From NCBI RefSeq assembly GCF_000142905.1, contig NW_013657667.1, positions 440,801 through 504,800 of the forward strand: a stretch of 64,000 nt of DNA. Direction: 5' to 3'. Source of the stretch: Thecamonas trahens ATCC 50062. Taxonomy: Eukaryota; Protista; Apusomonadida. The notes under the pieces are model-generated. The model did not search any database, had not been told where the DNA came from, and saw nothing but the letters and a program-made list of their open reading frames with translations. Within the stretch, counting starts at the first letter, position 1; each line of letters starts with the position of its first letter. Positions 35,502 to 42,479 of this stretch are shown in pieces. Position numbers and translations under genes: made by a program.

Positions 35502-35714
35502 GCGCTGCAGCACGTCCTGCAGCCCTGCCGCCGCTGTCGCCTTGAATGGTCGACACGCTGTGTGGCGCTTGGGGTTGTGGGTGTGTTAAACCGACTCATC
35601 ATCGATCAACTGTCAGCCCTCTCGCTCCCTCCCCATCGATCTCCTTGTCCCCAACACTGCGCTGTTGCCGTGGTGGTTGCACACGGCTTGGCGCCAAACA
35701 GAGCACCCGTCGAC

Positions 35715-35821
35715 TGCACCCACACACTCCACCACACACACACATACACACACATACACACACACACACGCATACATACATACATACATACATACGCATA
35801 CATACATACCTACACATACTC
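35715..35821 (+). repeat. (CA)n/(CATA)n microsatellite immediately upstream of the kinesin ATG
   Basis: Read directly from the sequence. Confidence 0.85.
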
Positions 35822-37669
35822 ATGTCGGTCCACCAGCTGCGATACTCGCGCACAGCAGGCACGGCTCCGCAGGCCAACACCAACAACGCCTCGGAAAGGG
35901 TCAAGGTCGTTCTCCGCGTCCGCCCCACCATCGACGAGGACCTCTCCAACGCACGGACGCAAGATGATCTGGTGGTGGGCGTCAAGGTGGCAGCAAACAA
36001 CAGGGCCATCTCGCTCAGCCAGCCGCTGTTTGACTCGCGCGAGTTCCGCGCCGACGCCGTCCTGGGCCCGCAGGCGACCCAGGATGACATGTATGCCGCC
36101 GTCGCCGCGCCCGTCGTCGACCAGGTCCTTGCAGGCTTCAACGGCACCGTCATGGCGTACGGGCAGACGGGCTCGGGCAAGACGTACACCGTGTTTGGGC
36201 CCGAAGAGACCGTGGAGCGGAGCGGCGATCCAAACTACTTTGAAAAGTGCGGCGTCATTCCGCGGGCTATCGACCACGTCTTTGAGCACATCAACGCGTG
36301 CAAGGAGACGACCGAGTTCCGCGTCGCCATCTCGTGCCTTGAGATCTACATGGAGTATGTCATGGACCTGTTTGACCTCGACAAGGCCAACATGGCTGTC
36401 CGTGAGGACCCCGAGTCCGGCGTCTTTGTCGAGGGCATGCAGCGCATCGCCGTCGCCTCGCCCTTTGACGCCCTCGTCCTCATCCAGGAGGCCTTCAAGA
36501 ATCGCGCCATTTCGCAGACGTACATGAACAAGACGTCGTCGCGCTCGCATGTCATCGTCTTCATCTCGGTCGAGCAGCGCCCCATCGCGCCGCTTCCCGG
36601 CTCGCCCAACGCCGGCGGCCTTCGCCCGGTCAAGTCCGGCCTCCTCACCCTCGTCGACCTTGCAGGCTCGGAGCGGGTCTCAAAGTCCGGCTCAGACGGC
36701 CAGCGCCTTCGCGAGGCTAAGCGCATCAACCAGTCGCTCTGTGCGCTCGGAAACTGCGTCGCCGCCCTCTCCGAGCGCAAGCCCGACCGCCACATCCCCT
36801 ACCGCAACTGTAAGCTCACCCGCATCCTTACAGACTCGCTCGGCGGCAACACCAAGACCTGCCTTGTCGCCACAATCTGCCCCACCGTCTACAACTACGA
36901 AGAGTCCATCTCCACCTGCCTTTTTGCCACCCGCGCCATGTCAGTTCGGACCCGCGCGCGCGTCAACGTCACCGACGCCTTCTCCGGCGAGCCGCCCAAG
37001 CCGATACAGCAGGCGCTGCCGCTCCCGCCCGCTCTCGCTGCCTCGTCCTCGTTTGATCGCAACCTCGCTGCCCGAACCTACTCGCCGCCGCCGAGCTCAG
37101 CCCGCAAGTCGCGCGCTCCCGCCGCTGCTGGCGGCGCTACCTCGGCCGGAGCGCTAGAGCCCGAGTACGAGTACTACGAAGAGGAGGTCGTCCTCGGCGA
37201 CGATGAGGTCCAGCTCCTCGCCTCCACTGGCCGCACCACGGGTCTTACCACGATCCACCCCTCCTTGCGCTCCTCGGGCTTGCTCGCCTCGCCGGCTCGC
37301 GCAGACTCGCGCGAGCTCATCGCCGCTAACCGTGCTCTCCGCTCGCAGGTGGCCAACCTCGAAGCCGCGCTCTCCGCCGACGTCGTTCCCAAGTCGCACA
37401 TCGACGAGCTGTGGAAGAAGCGCGAGCACGAGCTCGTCGCCAAGTTTACCCGCATCATCACCCACATGCAGTCTCAGATCGAGAAGCAGGCTGCCACCAT
37501 TGTCTCGCTCCAGCAGCGCCTCGACGCCGCCGCGGCTCCAGCCGCCCCGCCCGCGGCCTCGCCCGCACGCTCAGATGGCGACATTGAGCAGCTTGTCGCT
37601 GGCCTCCTCTCCATCCCTTCCATCCGCACCAAGCTCCAGACACACATCGCCGCCACGCCCGGCTCGTGA
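35822..37669 (+). CDS. Kinesin motor protein (N-terminal motor, short C-terminal coiled coil)
   Basis: RVKVVLRVRP, P-loop GQTGSGKT, switch I SSRSH, switch II DLAGSE, HIPYR...LTRILTDSLGGN. Confidence 0.95.
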   Translation: MSVHQLRYSRTAGTAPQANTNNASERVKVVLRVRPTIDEDLSNARTQDDLVVGVKVAANNRAISLSQPLFDSREFRADAVLGPQATQDDMYAAVAAPVVDQVLAGFNGTVMAYGQTGSGKTYTVFGPEETVERSGDPNYFEKCGVIPRAIDHVFEHINACKETTEFRVAISCLEIYMEYVMDLFDLDKANMAVREDPESGVFVEGMQRIAVASPFDALVLIQEAFKNRAISQTYMNKTSSRSHVIVFISVEQRPIAPLPGSPNAGGLRPVKSGLLTLVDLAGSERVSKSGSDGQRLREAKRINQSLCALGNCVAALSERKPDRHIPYRNCKLTRILTDSLGGNTKTCLVATICPTVYNYEESISTCLFATRAMSVRTRARVNVTDAFSGEPPKPIQQALPLPPALAASSSFDRNLAARTYSPPPSSARKSRAPAAAGGATSAGALEPEYEYYEEEVVLGDDEVQLLASTGRTTGLTTIHPSLRSSGLLASPARADSRELIAANRALRSQVANLEAALSADVVPKSHIDELWKKREHELVAKFTRIITHMQSQIEKQAATIVSLQQRLDAAAAPAAPPAASPARSDGDIEQLVAGLLSIPSIRTKLQTHIAATPGS

Positions 37670-37703: not shown

Positions 37704-38663
37704 ATGAAAGCAACCAGTCTGATCGCGAACAGCGCGACTGCTCGCCAGCTGACTCGTGCCCTCCGCTCCACCATCAACACTCCCCACCCGTCCATGCTCG
37801 GCTTTAATACTTCGCGATCACTTCCTGCACCGCACACGCTAGCACTCGAGCCGATGCCTTCGTCGTCTGCCTCGCATGGCCAGTCGCGCGGAGGCTTCCT
37901 GGCGGCAGGTGGTGTCGGAAAAAGCCGCAGTTTGACTGATCGGCAAAGACGCGCCGATCAACCGCTTCCGCCATCGCCACGGGAGCGAAAGCGGAAGCGG
38001 ACACTGCTGCGGCAGGCGACAAGCCCACCATCAGGCTCGCAAATGACCCAGCCGACCCAGCTAGTCACCCACATGGGACAGCTCTCGCCGCTCTCCCAGC
38101 TATCGGCCAAGCTCTCGGCGCTCCAGGATCCGCCACTCCGCGGCGCGTCTGCCGTCGTCCCCTCGCACCCTCTCCCGTCGACGAGCGCGAGCTTTGCGCC
38201 TCGGCCGCGGCCGGCAAGCACCAGCTCGCTTCGCCGGCTCTCGATGGGCGCTACGCCGCCGGATAGTCAGGCGGCGCTCAGCGGCGAGGCCGGGTCGGCG
38301 CGAGCCGGACGGACCACGAGCGCGCTGCTGGTCGAGCTGGCGCCATCGCACGATGTGGCCGACTCGTTGCTGTTTATGCGCGAGCAGATGGTGGCACTCG
38401 GGAAAAGAATGCAGCGGCTGGAGGATGCTGTTGCGAGCCTCTCGTCCACTGCTAGTTGTCACCGACGAGGTGACGACGATGTTGACCAAGAATCGTCCGG
38501 CTCGTCGACCCGCGGCGGGAGCGACGACGATGACGATGGAAGCGGCCGGCGCGCGCCCGAGCTCGCCAACGACGACGACCCCATCGCTGCCCAGCACACG
38601 CACGCCCTCAAGCGCCGCATCGAGCTCATCATCCGCAAGCACCACTCTGAGGTGGGACGGTAG
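37704..38663 (+). CDS. Hypothetical Ser/Pro-rich protein with a short C-terminal coiled coil (start uncertain)
   Basis: Open frame filling the space between the kinesin and XRN genes; helical segment LLFMREQMVALGKRMQRLEDAV. Confidence 0.5.
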   Translation: MKATSLIANSATARQLTRALRSTINTPHPSMLGFNTSRSLPAPHTLALEPMPSSSASHGQSRGGFLAAGGVGKSRSLTDRQRRADQPLPPSPRERKRKRTLLRQATSPPSGSQMTQPTQLVTHMGQLSPLSQLSAKLSALQDPPLRGASAVVPSHPLPSTSASFAPRPRPASTSSLRRLSMGATPPDSQAALSGEAGSARAGRTTSALLVELAPSHDVADSLLFMREQMVALGKRMQRLEDAVASLSSTASCHRRGDDDVDQESSGSSTRGGSDDDDDGSGRRAPELANDDDPIAAQHTHALKRRIELIIRKHHSEVGR

Positions 38664-38683: not shown

Positions 38684-40843
38684 TCAGGACCGCAGTGCCC
38701 GGCCGCGCCACATGACCAGGGAGACAACCGCACCGGCTATGGCCGCCGCGCCGACCGCCACAAGCGCACCCGACACCCACGGCGAGGCTAGCAGCGAGGG
38801 GCGGAGGACGATGATCGGCGCGTGAGGGTCATGCAGAGGAACAAGTGAGTCAGGCGAGGCCGTCCGACGCGGCGTGCACGCGTGGCCGACTACGTCGGCC
38901 TTGTCGCAATTGCTGCACAGCAGTGCCGGCCTCACAATCGGGACGCACTGCTTGGCGCGGTGACCCTTGCCACCGCAGCCAAAGCAGCGAACCGGCAGAC
39001 TGCCGCATGTGAGCTCGCCACGCTTGGCCGCAAGCTCGCGCTCGTGCAGCGCAACTACCGGCCACGGGTCGGCGCCGGGCAGCGTGCCGACGACCACTTG
39101 AGACGGGGCTAGCGACGGCGGCACAAAGGCGTACTCGTCAACGGCCGTTGTGGCAACCATGCAGTGTGCCACCGGCGCGTTCTGCAACAGGCCGCTGATG
39201 TCGCCGCCGCCTGGCAGCAAAATCGCGCGCGTCTCGCCGTCGAACCGCACGCCGCCGCTGGCAAGTGATGCGTACAGCCGCGCCTCGCCGCGGGTGTTGC
39301 GCTTGGCGGCAGTTGGCGAGAGCGGCGAGCGCGCCAGCGCGTCAGCCGCTGCGTCTGCCACCGCCTGCACGTCCACTGCCGGCAGAAGCGGGATGGCCTG
39401 CCAGTCGCGCGACCGCGCGTCGGCGTCGCGGTCAAAGCGCACCGGGTACATGTGCGAGATCGGCGAGTCACGCGCAGTCATTAGGTCTGCCAGCTGCGGC
39501 GGAAGTGCCGCGTCTGCGGACGATGGCGGAAGGACACACATCAGCTGGAGTAGCGCAGGCAGCGGCGCACCAAGTTGAGCGGGATCCAGGGCGAGTGCGT
39601 CTGCGATCGACGCATCGCGGGTGGCCGCCGCCATGTCTGCCACCAGCGGCGCGTGCGGGAATGGGTAGTGCCAGTTCCACGACGGCACGCCGCGAACGTA
39701 GTAGGCGAGTGTCCATGCGAGACCGCACAGGTACTCTCGGGCCATGCGCGTCGCCAGCGCTGCCTGCTCGGCATCGCTGTCGATCCGGTACCGGACCCGG
39801 TAGTACTCGGCAGCCCACGAGTGCGAGGCGTCAAACTGATCGGCCAGGTACGCTGCCTCGGCCGAGGCCAGCGCGGTGAGGAAGATGCCCAGCCGCGACG
39901 GACAGATAGAGCCGGGCAAGTCCGTGCCTGCCGGTGACGAGATGAATCCGCCCATGAGCGGTAGCGAGGCAAGGTACGCGGTGACAAGCGTGTTGAGCCC
40001 GCCAAAGTACGCGTCGAGCGTCGGCGCCCTAGGCAGAAAGTCGTTGCCGACCAGCATGAGCACAAGCACAAAGTCGGTGATAGCGGCCGAGGAGTCAAAG
40101 GCAAAGGGGAGGCGATCGGCGGCGTCCTGGCCAAGCACTGCTGCCAGAGTGGCCCGCAGCGTAGCGATGTTGACCAGTGTCATTGGCGGAAGAGTTGGAG
40201 CGATGGCTGCCGACCTCGCCGACCGGCGCTGCGGCTTCTCACGGAGGACGTAGACATGGCGCTCGCCGGTGAGGAGCGAGAGGAAAAACATGTCTGCATC
40301 CGAGCCGTAGATGACATGGACGAGGTTGGGATCGTAGCCCGGCGCTGCGCGCTGGCCGCGGATAAACTCCATGATCTTGTGCTCGCCCTCGCCCGGAACT
40401 GACGAGTCCGAGACGATAAAAGTGAGATGAGCATACTTTGCGATGGCAGCGAGCTCGGCAGCGAGTCTATGGCTCATGGCCTCAACACCCTCCATGAACG
40501 GTGTGCCCGGAGTAATGAGGTTCGAGTCAAAGTCGCTGCGGCGCCAGGCCGGCTCATCGGCGGCATCGTCGGCCTTGACAAACCGGCGGCCGCGCTGCTG
40601 AACCATCTTGGCGCGCGGAGCGACACCATCGAGAGCAAAGTAGACGAGCTGACTCGGAGCAATGCGATCGATGAGCCCGGTGATGTAGGCCTTGATAGCC
40701 TCTGGCGTCCTCGCGTTGTGGACGACACCGTTCATGTCGAGATACAGCCGGCCAGCGGCAACCTTTGCCGTCTTTGCCCGACATGGCTCAAAGGCCTTCT
40801 TGCACTTGTTCTCCAGCCACTTTGCCAATCCAGGAACACCCAT
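38684..40843 (-). CDS. Compact XRN-family 5'-3' exoribonuclease (719 aa) with a CCHC zinc knuckle and a C-terminal transmembrane tail
   Basis: MGVPGLAKWL, LYLDMNGVVH, ALDGVAPRAKMVQQRGRRF, FDSNLITPGTPFM, PGEGEHKIMEFIR, YGSDADM, VGNDFLP, YVRGVPSWNWHYPFPHAP, QLMCVLPP. Knuckle CFGCGGKGHRAKQC. Tail WVSGALVAVGAAAIAGAVVSLVMW-RGRALRS*. Confidence 0.93.
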   Translation of the reverse strand: MGVPGLAKWLENKCKKAFEPCRAKTAKVAAGRLYLDMNGVVHNARTPEAIKAYITGLIDRIAPSQLVYFALDGVAPRAKMVQQRGRRFVKADDAADEPAWRRSDFDSNLITPGTPFMEGVEAMSHRLAAELAAIAKYAHLTFIVSDSSVPGEGEHKIMEFIRGQRAAPGYDPNLVHVIYGSDADMFFLSLLTGERHVYVLREKPQRRSARSAAIAPTLPPMTLVNIATLRATLAAVLGQDAADRLPFAFDSSAAITDFVLVLMLVGNDFLPRAPTLDAYFGGLNTLVTAYLASLPLMGGFISSPAGTDLPGSICPSRLGIFLTALASAEAAYLADQFDASHSWAAEYYRVRYRIDSDAEQAALATRMAREYLCGLAWTLAYYVRGVPSWNWHYPFPHAPLVADMAAATRDASIADALALDPAQLGAPLPALLQLMCVLPPSSADAALPPQLADLMTARDSPISHMYPVRFDRDADARSRDWQAIPLLPAVDVQAVADAAADALARSPLSPTAAKRNTRGEARLYASLASGGVRFDGETRAILLPGGGDISGLLQNAPVAHCMVATTAVDEYAFVPPSLAPSQVVVGTLPGADPWPVVALHERELAAKRGELTCGSLPVRCFGCGGKGHRAKQCVPIVRPALLCSNCDKADVVGHACTPRRTASPDSLVPLHDPHAPIIVLRPSLLASPWVSGALVAVGAAAIAGAVVSLVMWRGRALRS

Positions 40844-41195: not shown

Positions 41196-42231
41196 ATGGA
41201 CGACATGGTGGAGGAGGAGTTTGACAGTATGTCTTTGCGGAGGGAAGAGGGGGGGAGGGAGGGAGGGAGGGAGGAGGGTGTGTGTGTGGGGGGGGGGGGG
41301 GAGGGGGGGGGAAGGCAGACGCGTGGGGTGGAGGGAAGGTGGTGGTGGGTGGTGGTGGCCTGGACTGTACTCATGGACGACATGGATGGGACTTTGTGCA
41401 TGTGTGTATGTGTGTATGTGTATGTGTGTGTGTGTATATATATGTGTGTGTGTGTGTGCGATCGCGTGGGTTGCTCGGGCTGATGGCGATGGCGTATGGT
41501 GGACGGGTGGACGGGTGGGCTGGTCGGACTGGTCGGACTGGTCGGACTGGGCGGACTTGGGGGGGGGGGGGGATACAATAGCCGAGGTCAAGGTCATTGT
41601 GGTGGGCAATGGAGGCGTGGGCAAGACGTCGATGATTCGGAGAGTGGCCCGCGGACTCTTCACCGACAACTACCGCAAGACGATAGGAGTTGACTTTCTG
41701 GAGAAGAGCATGTACATCGAGTCGCTGGGTGAGGAGGTCCGGCTGATGCTATGGGATACGGCAGGACAGGAGGAGTTTGATGCTGTGACACGGACTTACT
41801 ACCGCGGAGCTGGTGCATGCGTCTACGCCTTTTCCACTACGGATCGCGACTCGTTCGAGGCCATCCGATCGTGGCGGGCAAAGGTCGAGGCCGAGGCGCC
41901 AGGCATTGCCGCCGTGCTGGTGCAGAACAAAGTTGATTTGCTCGACTCGTCGGTGGTGACACCCGACGAGGCCGAGGCCCTGGCACAGGAGCTTCGGCTT
42001 AAGTTCTACCGCATCTCGGTCAAGGACGACGTCAACGTCCGGCCCATGTTTGAATATCTGGTGGAGGCGGCGGTGGCCAAGGCGCGGACGGCCGTAGTGC
42101 CCGGACAGACCAACATGGACTTTCTTTCACCAGCCCAAGTCCAGGCCGAGAAGCAGTCGTTTGCCGTCCAGCCGACCCGCGGCAAGAAGCGGACGACCTC
42201 GTCGTCCAAGTCGTTTTGCACCTTGCTCTGA
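41196..42231 (+). CDS. RAB23: Rab23 small GTPase; exons 41196-41226 and 41582-42231
   Basis: Spliced product MDDMVEEEFDTEVKVIVVGNGGVGKTS...YRKTIGVDFLE...RLMLWDTAGQEEFDAVTRTYYRGA...FSTTDRDSF...VQNKVDL. CaaX box CTLL. GTATGT...ATAG intron. Confidence 0.93.
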
Positions 42232-42287
42232 AGCGCGTGCTCACAGGAAGCGACTCTATGTCACCGATGGCGTATGCGAGGAGAGGG

Positions 42288-42330
42288 AAGAAGAAGAAGA
42301 AGAAGAAGAAGAAGAAGAAGAAGAAGAAAG
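42288..42330 (+). repeat. (GAA)n trinucleotide repeat
   Basis: Read directly; lies just before a gap. Confidence 0.9.
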
Positions 42331-42379
42331 AAGGAGATGCAAAGGAGAAGAAGGGAGAGGAGGAGAAAGAGATAAACAT

Positions 42380-42479
42380 NNNNNNNNNNNNNNNNNNNNN
42401 NNNNNNNNNNNNNNNNNNNNNNNNNNNNNNNNNNNNNNNNNNNNNNNNNNNNNNNNNNNNNNNNNNNNNNNNNNNNNNN
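42380..42479. other. Assembly gap (N run)
   Basis: Run of 100 N. Confidence 1.

Follow-up and report, generated by a model that had tools for sequence, protein, structure and literature searches.

To our knowledge, characterised XRN enzymes are soluble and are localised through partner proteins. Ribonucleases that are tethered to a membrane and so localise RNA processing include the 3'-5' trimmer PNLDC1 and the bacterial enzymes RNase Y and RNase E. The gene described here encodes an XRN core with a candidate membrane anchor. It resembles the nuclear Xrn2/Rat1 enzymes (PDB 7OPK, 3FQD, 5FIR) most closely, sharing their two conserved regions, active-site residues and core size; in sequence (3fqd, E = 1e-78) as in structure, its top match is an enzyme of this type. 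It differs from them in its low identity (~30-39%), the lack of a supported placement within the Xrn2 clade, the absence of a CCHC insert between the conserved regions and a unique C-terminal hydrophobic helix. Xrn1/Pacman, the enzyme of cytoplasmic mRNA decay (PDB 2Y35, 3PIE), has the same catalytic core and 5'-monophosphate pocket, whereas our protein lacks the D1-D4/SH3-like C-terminal domains and is about half as long. The likeness to PNLDC1, RNase Y and RNase E is one of analogy only: the folds are unrelated, and PNLDC1 works with opposite polarity.

The gene was found in a window of 64,000 nucleotides (the whole stretch of Thecamonas trahens DNA that was analysed), and its features are collected in Table 1. 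The reading frame comprises 719 uninterrupted codons and opens with the MGVPGL that is canonical for XRN enzymes. Upstream, the stop-to-stop frame extends to 41578 through low-complexity repeats whose composition is not of the coding type. The identical 719-aa product is recorded in NCBI, UniRef, EukProt and ESM Atlas; the public gene model therefore shares the same stop, which does not in itself show that the protein is produced.

Table 1. Features of the XRN gene, given as positions in the window and residues of the predicted protein.
Feature	Position	Strand	Residues	Basis
Complete intronless CDS, XRN-family 5'-3' exoribonuclease	38684-40843	-	719 aa	translation, Pfam
Start codon ATG	40841-40843	-		translation
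Stop codon TGA	38684-38686	-		translation
XRN_N catalytic domain (D36, D72, E152, E154, D182, D184, K79/Q83/R86/R87)	40235-40843	-	1-203	Pfam, alignment
XRN_M helical domain, including the SWNWHYP stacking-Trp motif	39260-39818	-	342-528	Pfam, alignment
CCHC zinc knuckle, CX2CX4HX4C	38945-38986	-	620-633	exact spacing
Second Cys/His cluster, CX2CX7HX1C	38876-38917	-	643-656	alignment to tandem-CCHC protein
Uncharged Ala/Gly/Val-rich helix of 24 residues, candidate tail-anchor TM segment	38708-38779	-	689-712	hydrophobicity, AlphaFold2
Basic C-terminal element RGRALRS, net +3	38687-38707	-		translation

Both conserved regions were recognised by Pfam, XRN_N (PF03159) with 198.7 bits (E = 1.3e-58, cut-off 22.9) and XRN_M (PF17846) with 163.3 bits (E = 1.2e-47, cut-off 23.8). 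No Pfam match to the Xrn1 C-terminal domain families was obtained in the 719-aa protein, which is Xrn2-like in size, in agreement with the original prediction that these domains are absent. The shortened loops that it described are a fair summary as well: the XRN_N match is 203 residues long, compared with 241 positions in the profile, and the conserved regions have no long linker between them. We aligned the protein with Schizosaccharomyces pombe Rat1 (3fqd, E = 1e-78) and with 57 homologues, and took the list of Rat1/Xrn1 active-site residues from the literature (PMC5499597). All seven metal-binding acidic residues are present, in the motifs LYLDMNG (D36), ALDGVAP (D72), PGEGEHK (E152, E154), GSDADM (D182, D184) and GNDFLP (D268). 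They align with the Rat1 motifs in columns that are invariant or near-invariant in the 57-homologue alignment. The 5'-phosphate pocket (K79, Q83, R86, R87, within PRAKMVQQRGRRF) is complete and the stacking residues are kept (H42 in NGVVH, and the Trp motif); most of the catalytic, phosphate-pocket and stacking residues occupy invariant columns. The XRN catalytic motifs are therefore intact, as had been claimed.

An AlphaFold2 model built from the 57-homologue alignment was confident for residues 1-610 (pTM 0.81). Its top Foldseek matches were crystal and cryo-EM structures of Xrn2/Rat1, with TM-scores of 0.74/0.82 to Xrn2 of C. thermophilum; normalised to full-length Xrn1 chains, the TM-score was 0.41-0.55. 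Together, the complete motifs, the confident model and the Xrn2/Rat1 structural matches indicate that the enzyme is intact and that its core has the size of an Xrn2 core. Judged from its sequence, the 719-aa protein is very probably an active XRN.

The CCHC knuckle, CFGCGGKGHRAKQC, lies exactly where it had been predicted. In Pfam zf-CCHC (PF00098) it scored 15.4 bits (E = 0.02; cut-off 20.8 bits), and in short stretches it aligned with CCHC proteins (35-79% identity); such generic CCHC proteins were the sole matches to the C-terminal part of the XRN. The second Cys/His cluster of the original prediction is present too and aligns with the second knuckle of a tandem-CCHC protein (P0121), with the His displaced. 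From its spacing we classify it as a degenerate knuckle rather than a canonical one. A proline-rich linker separates this cluster from the hydrophobic helix. The knuckle of our protein follows the core, whereas knuckle-bearing Xrn2 proteins and a paralogue from the same genome (C39) carry theirs between the two conserved regions.

The hydrophobic helix and the RGRALRS tail of the original prediction were both found. The helix has a Trp at each end, contains no charged residue and ends 7 residues from the C-terminus. The Kyte-Doolittle 19-residue maximum of the whole protein (2.42) falls within the tail. When the whole protein was shuffled at constant composition, a window of this hydrophobicity arose among the last 40 residues in only 0.18% of trials, and in 0.46% when the shuffling was confined to the last 190 residues. 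The sole other segment with a Kyte-Doolittle value >1.6 (windows starting at 247-252) overlaps the conserved core motif VGNDFLP, and the canonical MGVP N-terminus leaves no space for a signal peptide. The protein thus has the layout of a tail-anchored protein, with a single hydrophobic segment less than ~30 residues from the C-terminus and no signal peptide or other TM segment. Of the 262 ORFs that reach 150 aa in the six frames, 5 (the XRN included) have an equally hydrophobic tail, and at least two of these tails are repeat-derived. In the AlphaFold2 model a low-confidence helix spans residues 699-718 (confidence <50 for residues 611-719). The Kyte-Doolittle value is clearly positive, but on two further scales the helix was only marginal: its Wimley-White octanol sum over 24 residues was -3.4, compared to -7.8 for Fis1 of the same organism, and its Hessa-type sum was near zero.

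Fis1, Sec61beta and five complete R-SNARE genes of the same genome served as controls, and their C-termini were scored alike, by the Hessa-type 19-residue sum and the net charge downstream of those 19 residues. Four R-SNAREs gave sums of -4.2 to -5.8 with charges of +2 to +5, the Sec22-like R-SNARE +0.19 with 0, and Sec61beta -0.73 with +2. The XRN tail (-0.26, +3) resembles the organism's own Fis1 anchor (-0.38, +3) and not its SNAREs. Fis1-type anchors likewise combine a moderately hydrophobic helix rich in small residues with a short net +3 tail; they share no sequence homology with the XRN tail, and their targeting rules are known from yeast, mammals and plants. By these scores the XRN tail is a plausible low-hydrophobicity, basic-ended anchor at the lower limit of the type. 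In yeast, mammals and plants, anchors of this kind are targeted to the outer membrane of mitochondria or to peroxisomes, and the Fis1-type hydrophobicity and end charge point to the same two destinations here. The predicted tail anchor accordingly stands as far as its formal features go (an uncharged helix near the end, terminal Trp residues and a +3 charge) and is marginal on two hydrophobicity scales; its proposed mitochondrial or peroxisomal type agrees with Fis1 in Hessa-type score and end charge and is weaker on the Wimley-White scale. On the sequence features, we put the chances that the C-terminus is a genuine tail anchor at about even, and we regard an anchor in mitochondria or peroxisomes specifically as unlikely.

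The database searches for homologues covered records from genomes other than this one and its very near relatives. Among 5.8 billion proteins, a word-based search gave a best match of ~36-39% identity and no orthologue above 39%, and the C-terminal region alone gave no match. An exhaustive HMMER search of 1.84 billion representatives with residues 530-719 returned three weak generic CCHC matches and no homologue of the tail. Searched against its own genome, the stretch of the last 190 residues matched nothing besides the gene itself. In the ESM Atlas the feature search gave no usable match, and the structure rows had TM-scores of at most 0.32. A metagenome scan yielded 80 distant XRNs (26-44% identity), all of which lack a hydrophobic helix at the end. 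In a sample of 238 XRN homologues, none had a clean helix of this kind; two had a hydrophobic window near the end, and both look like mispredicted model ends. The searches thus yielded neither an orthologue nor a paralogue with the tail, and hence no sign of selection on it. Full-text literature searches found no report of a membrane-anchored XRN, and a survey of the PIN-like superfamily describes XRN_N only within soluble exonucleases (PMC5499597). A genuine anchor would thus be new to the XRN family, although this single sequence is its sole support to date.

Two of the metagenome XRN contigs came from human skin and gut assemblies. Their matches run uninterrupted over query residues 1-520 and 1-530, which is unlike human genes, and they were therefore not taken for human DNA; their use was confined to the metagenome scan. 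A viral origin of the gene was rejected, as no related viral contigs were found. The idea of a relationship to trypanosomatid XRNB/C was dropped in view of the spliceosomal introns of the genome and the lack of kinetoplastid matches.

The genome (28.7 Mb, 131 contigs) contains six XRN genes. Two are Xrn1-like (~1350-1600 codons, in open frames of 1577 and 1602 aa), one groups with the XRN clade that carries an R3H domain, one is Xrn2-like with the usual internal knuckle, one is extremely divergent with an RGG tail (L012; G000:C48:46715-47641), and the sixth is the gene described here. The Xrn2-type paralogue finds its best full-length matches (~70-95% of the query) at 41-49% identity in scattered protists. 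In a maximum-likelihood tree, our protein falls in no supported group with the Xrn1, R3H-XRN or Xrn2 clades; it is a lineage-restricted XRN paralogue. The divergent L012 protein has a branch length of 10, a large low-complexity insert within XRN_N and an RGG-rich C-terminus, and its DxD, ExE and KxxxQxxRR-type motifs are still recognisable.

The original prediction had itself raised a sequencing frameshift or an unspliced intron as a possible origin of the tail. If an indel, a missed intron or an earlier polyadenylation site had distorted the gene model or the assembly, the real end of the protein would lie near the zinc knuckles. The assembly does contain N-gaps, and the genome does contain introns, with GTAAGT/GTACGT donors, CAG/TAG acceptors and lengths of ~90-330 nt; in the 3' third of the XRN gene, however, no donor of this type was found. 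The codon-position GC pattern (GC1 > GC2, GC3 ~0.8) is unbroken to ~38700 and changes directly past the stop. While the codon score is weaker in residues 611-719 than in the core, the ORF frame still scores best within the tail (-0.10 vs -1.14 and -0.46 for codons 681-719), and the remaining minus-strand frames end in a stop at ~38850 or else continue antisense to the adjacent plus-strand coding region. The identical end of the public model also speaks against an artefact. The sole independent contig, from a metagenome (L015; ENA ERZ505273 NODE_21205), is 99.9% identical to window positions 41010-39858; it covers only the N-terminal half (the first ~328 codons) and so gives no information on the tail. 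Nothing in this genome corresponds to the last 300 nt of the contig, which is either a chimera assembled at low coverage or a structural variant in which the gene is cut off at ~residue 328. On balance we consider an artefactual tail improbable.

A correct gene end could still belong to a soluble XRN in which GC-biased drift has given rise to the Ala/Gly/Val stretch, a low-complexity extension with no membrane role; at most, the stretch might serve as a signal for oligomerisation or degradation. The GC content is 64-69% around the gene (~64% across the window), Ala makes up 16.7% of the protein, and the composition is unusual on a branch of 3.7 substitutions per site, the longest but one in the tree. 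The marginal Wimley-White and Hessa-type values, the lack of any tail homologue in our searches and the low AlphaFold2 confidence in the tail also speak for a soluble enzyme. Drift of this kind sits less easily with a pattern as specific as 24 consecutive uncharged residues with Trp on either side and three Arg among the last 7 residues of the protein, which shuffles reproduce in fewer than 0.5% of trials and which matches the organism's own Fis1 anchor in Hessa-type value and charge. We therefore hold a soluble enzyme to be possible, if somewhat unlikely. A more radical alternative is that the gene is a decaying, non-functional duplicate, i.e. a retro-copy of an XRN gene with a meaningless C-terminus. 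The gene lacks the intron that three of its paralogues share directly after ATGGGAG (Met-Gly; C56, C39, C24; L008, L009, L011), as a retro-copy would, and its branch is long. Against this, the frame is open over 719 codons with all catalytic and phosphate-pocket residues kept, the predicted fold is confident and GC3 is of the coding type throughout. Additionally, its identity to every XRN tested, the own paralogues included, is ~33-41%; such equidistance marks an old or fast-evolving copy and not a recent one. A decaying retro-copy is thus very improbable.

In the reading that we favour, with a tail anchor, the protein would be built as follows. A catalytically competent, Xrn2-like core of ~610 residues would be followed by a flexible segment of ~80 residues with one canonical and one degenerate knuckle, the canonical one likely serving as a grip for single-stranded RNA. 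The terminal helix and the net +3 tail would form the anchor and be inserted into the membrane after translation, so that the nuclease would face the cytosol on the surface of an organelle and degrade 5'-monophosphorylated RNA locally. We tentatively propose that the protein may be the first eukaryotic 5'-3' exoribonuclease that is an integral membrane protein with a tail anchor, placed on mitochondria or peroxisomes at their cytosolic face and degrading 5'-monophosphorylated RNA locally, with the knuckle aiding capture; we rate this full reading as possible, somewhat short of an even chance. Candidate substrates would be, for example, organelle-localised mRNAs, quality-control cleavage products or excised tRNA introns. 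We infer membrane insertion, the membrane concerned and the substrates; naming a specific organelle or function is speculation, and the PNLDC1-like role in small-RNA processing suggested by the original prediction is an analogy only.

If the anchor is real, eukaryotes can hard-wire 5'-3' RNA decay to the surface of an organelle, in parallel to bacterial RNase E/RNase Y and to PNLDC1 with its 3'-5' trimming in animals, and studies of localised RNA turnover would gain a simple handle. Should the tail be no more than a low-complexity extension driven by GC content, the gene is just another divergent XRN paralogue.

Several observations concern the surroundings of the gene. A plus-strand coding signal at 38060-38663 (GC3 0.87-0.97) ends with a TAG at 38661-38663, only 20 nt from the XRN stop on the opposite strand. 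In this convergent pair, the 3'UTR of either gene must reach into the coding sequence of the other. A Pfam search of this signal gave no match; it may be a small gene or the last exon of the upstream kinesin (35546-37669). On the other side, CA/TG microsatellite and proline-rich low-complexity sequence lies upstream of the XRN start (41300-41560 on the minus strand, and ~42270-42380), and a run of N, an assembly gap, directly follows a gene for a Rab-like GTPase (41590-42231, plus strand). Outside this genome, an XRN of the stramenopile alga Tribonema minus (P0054, 683 aa) carries a hydrophobic, basic presequence of ~63 residues before its canonical MGIP start, and judging from this presequence it may be targeted to an organelle.
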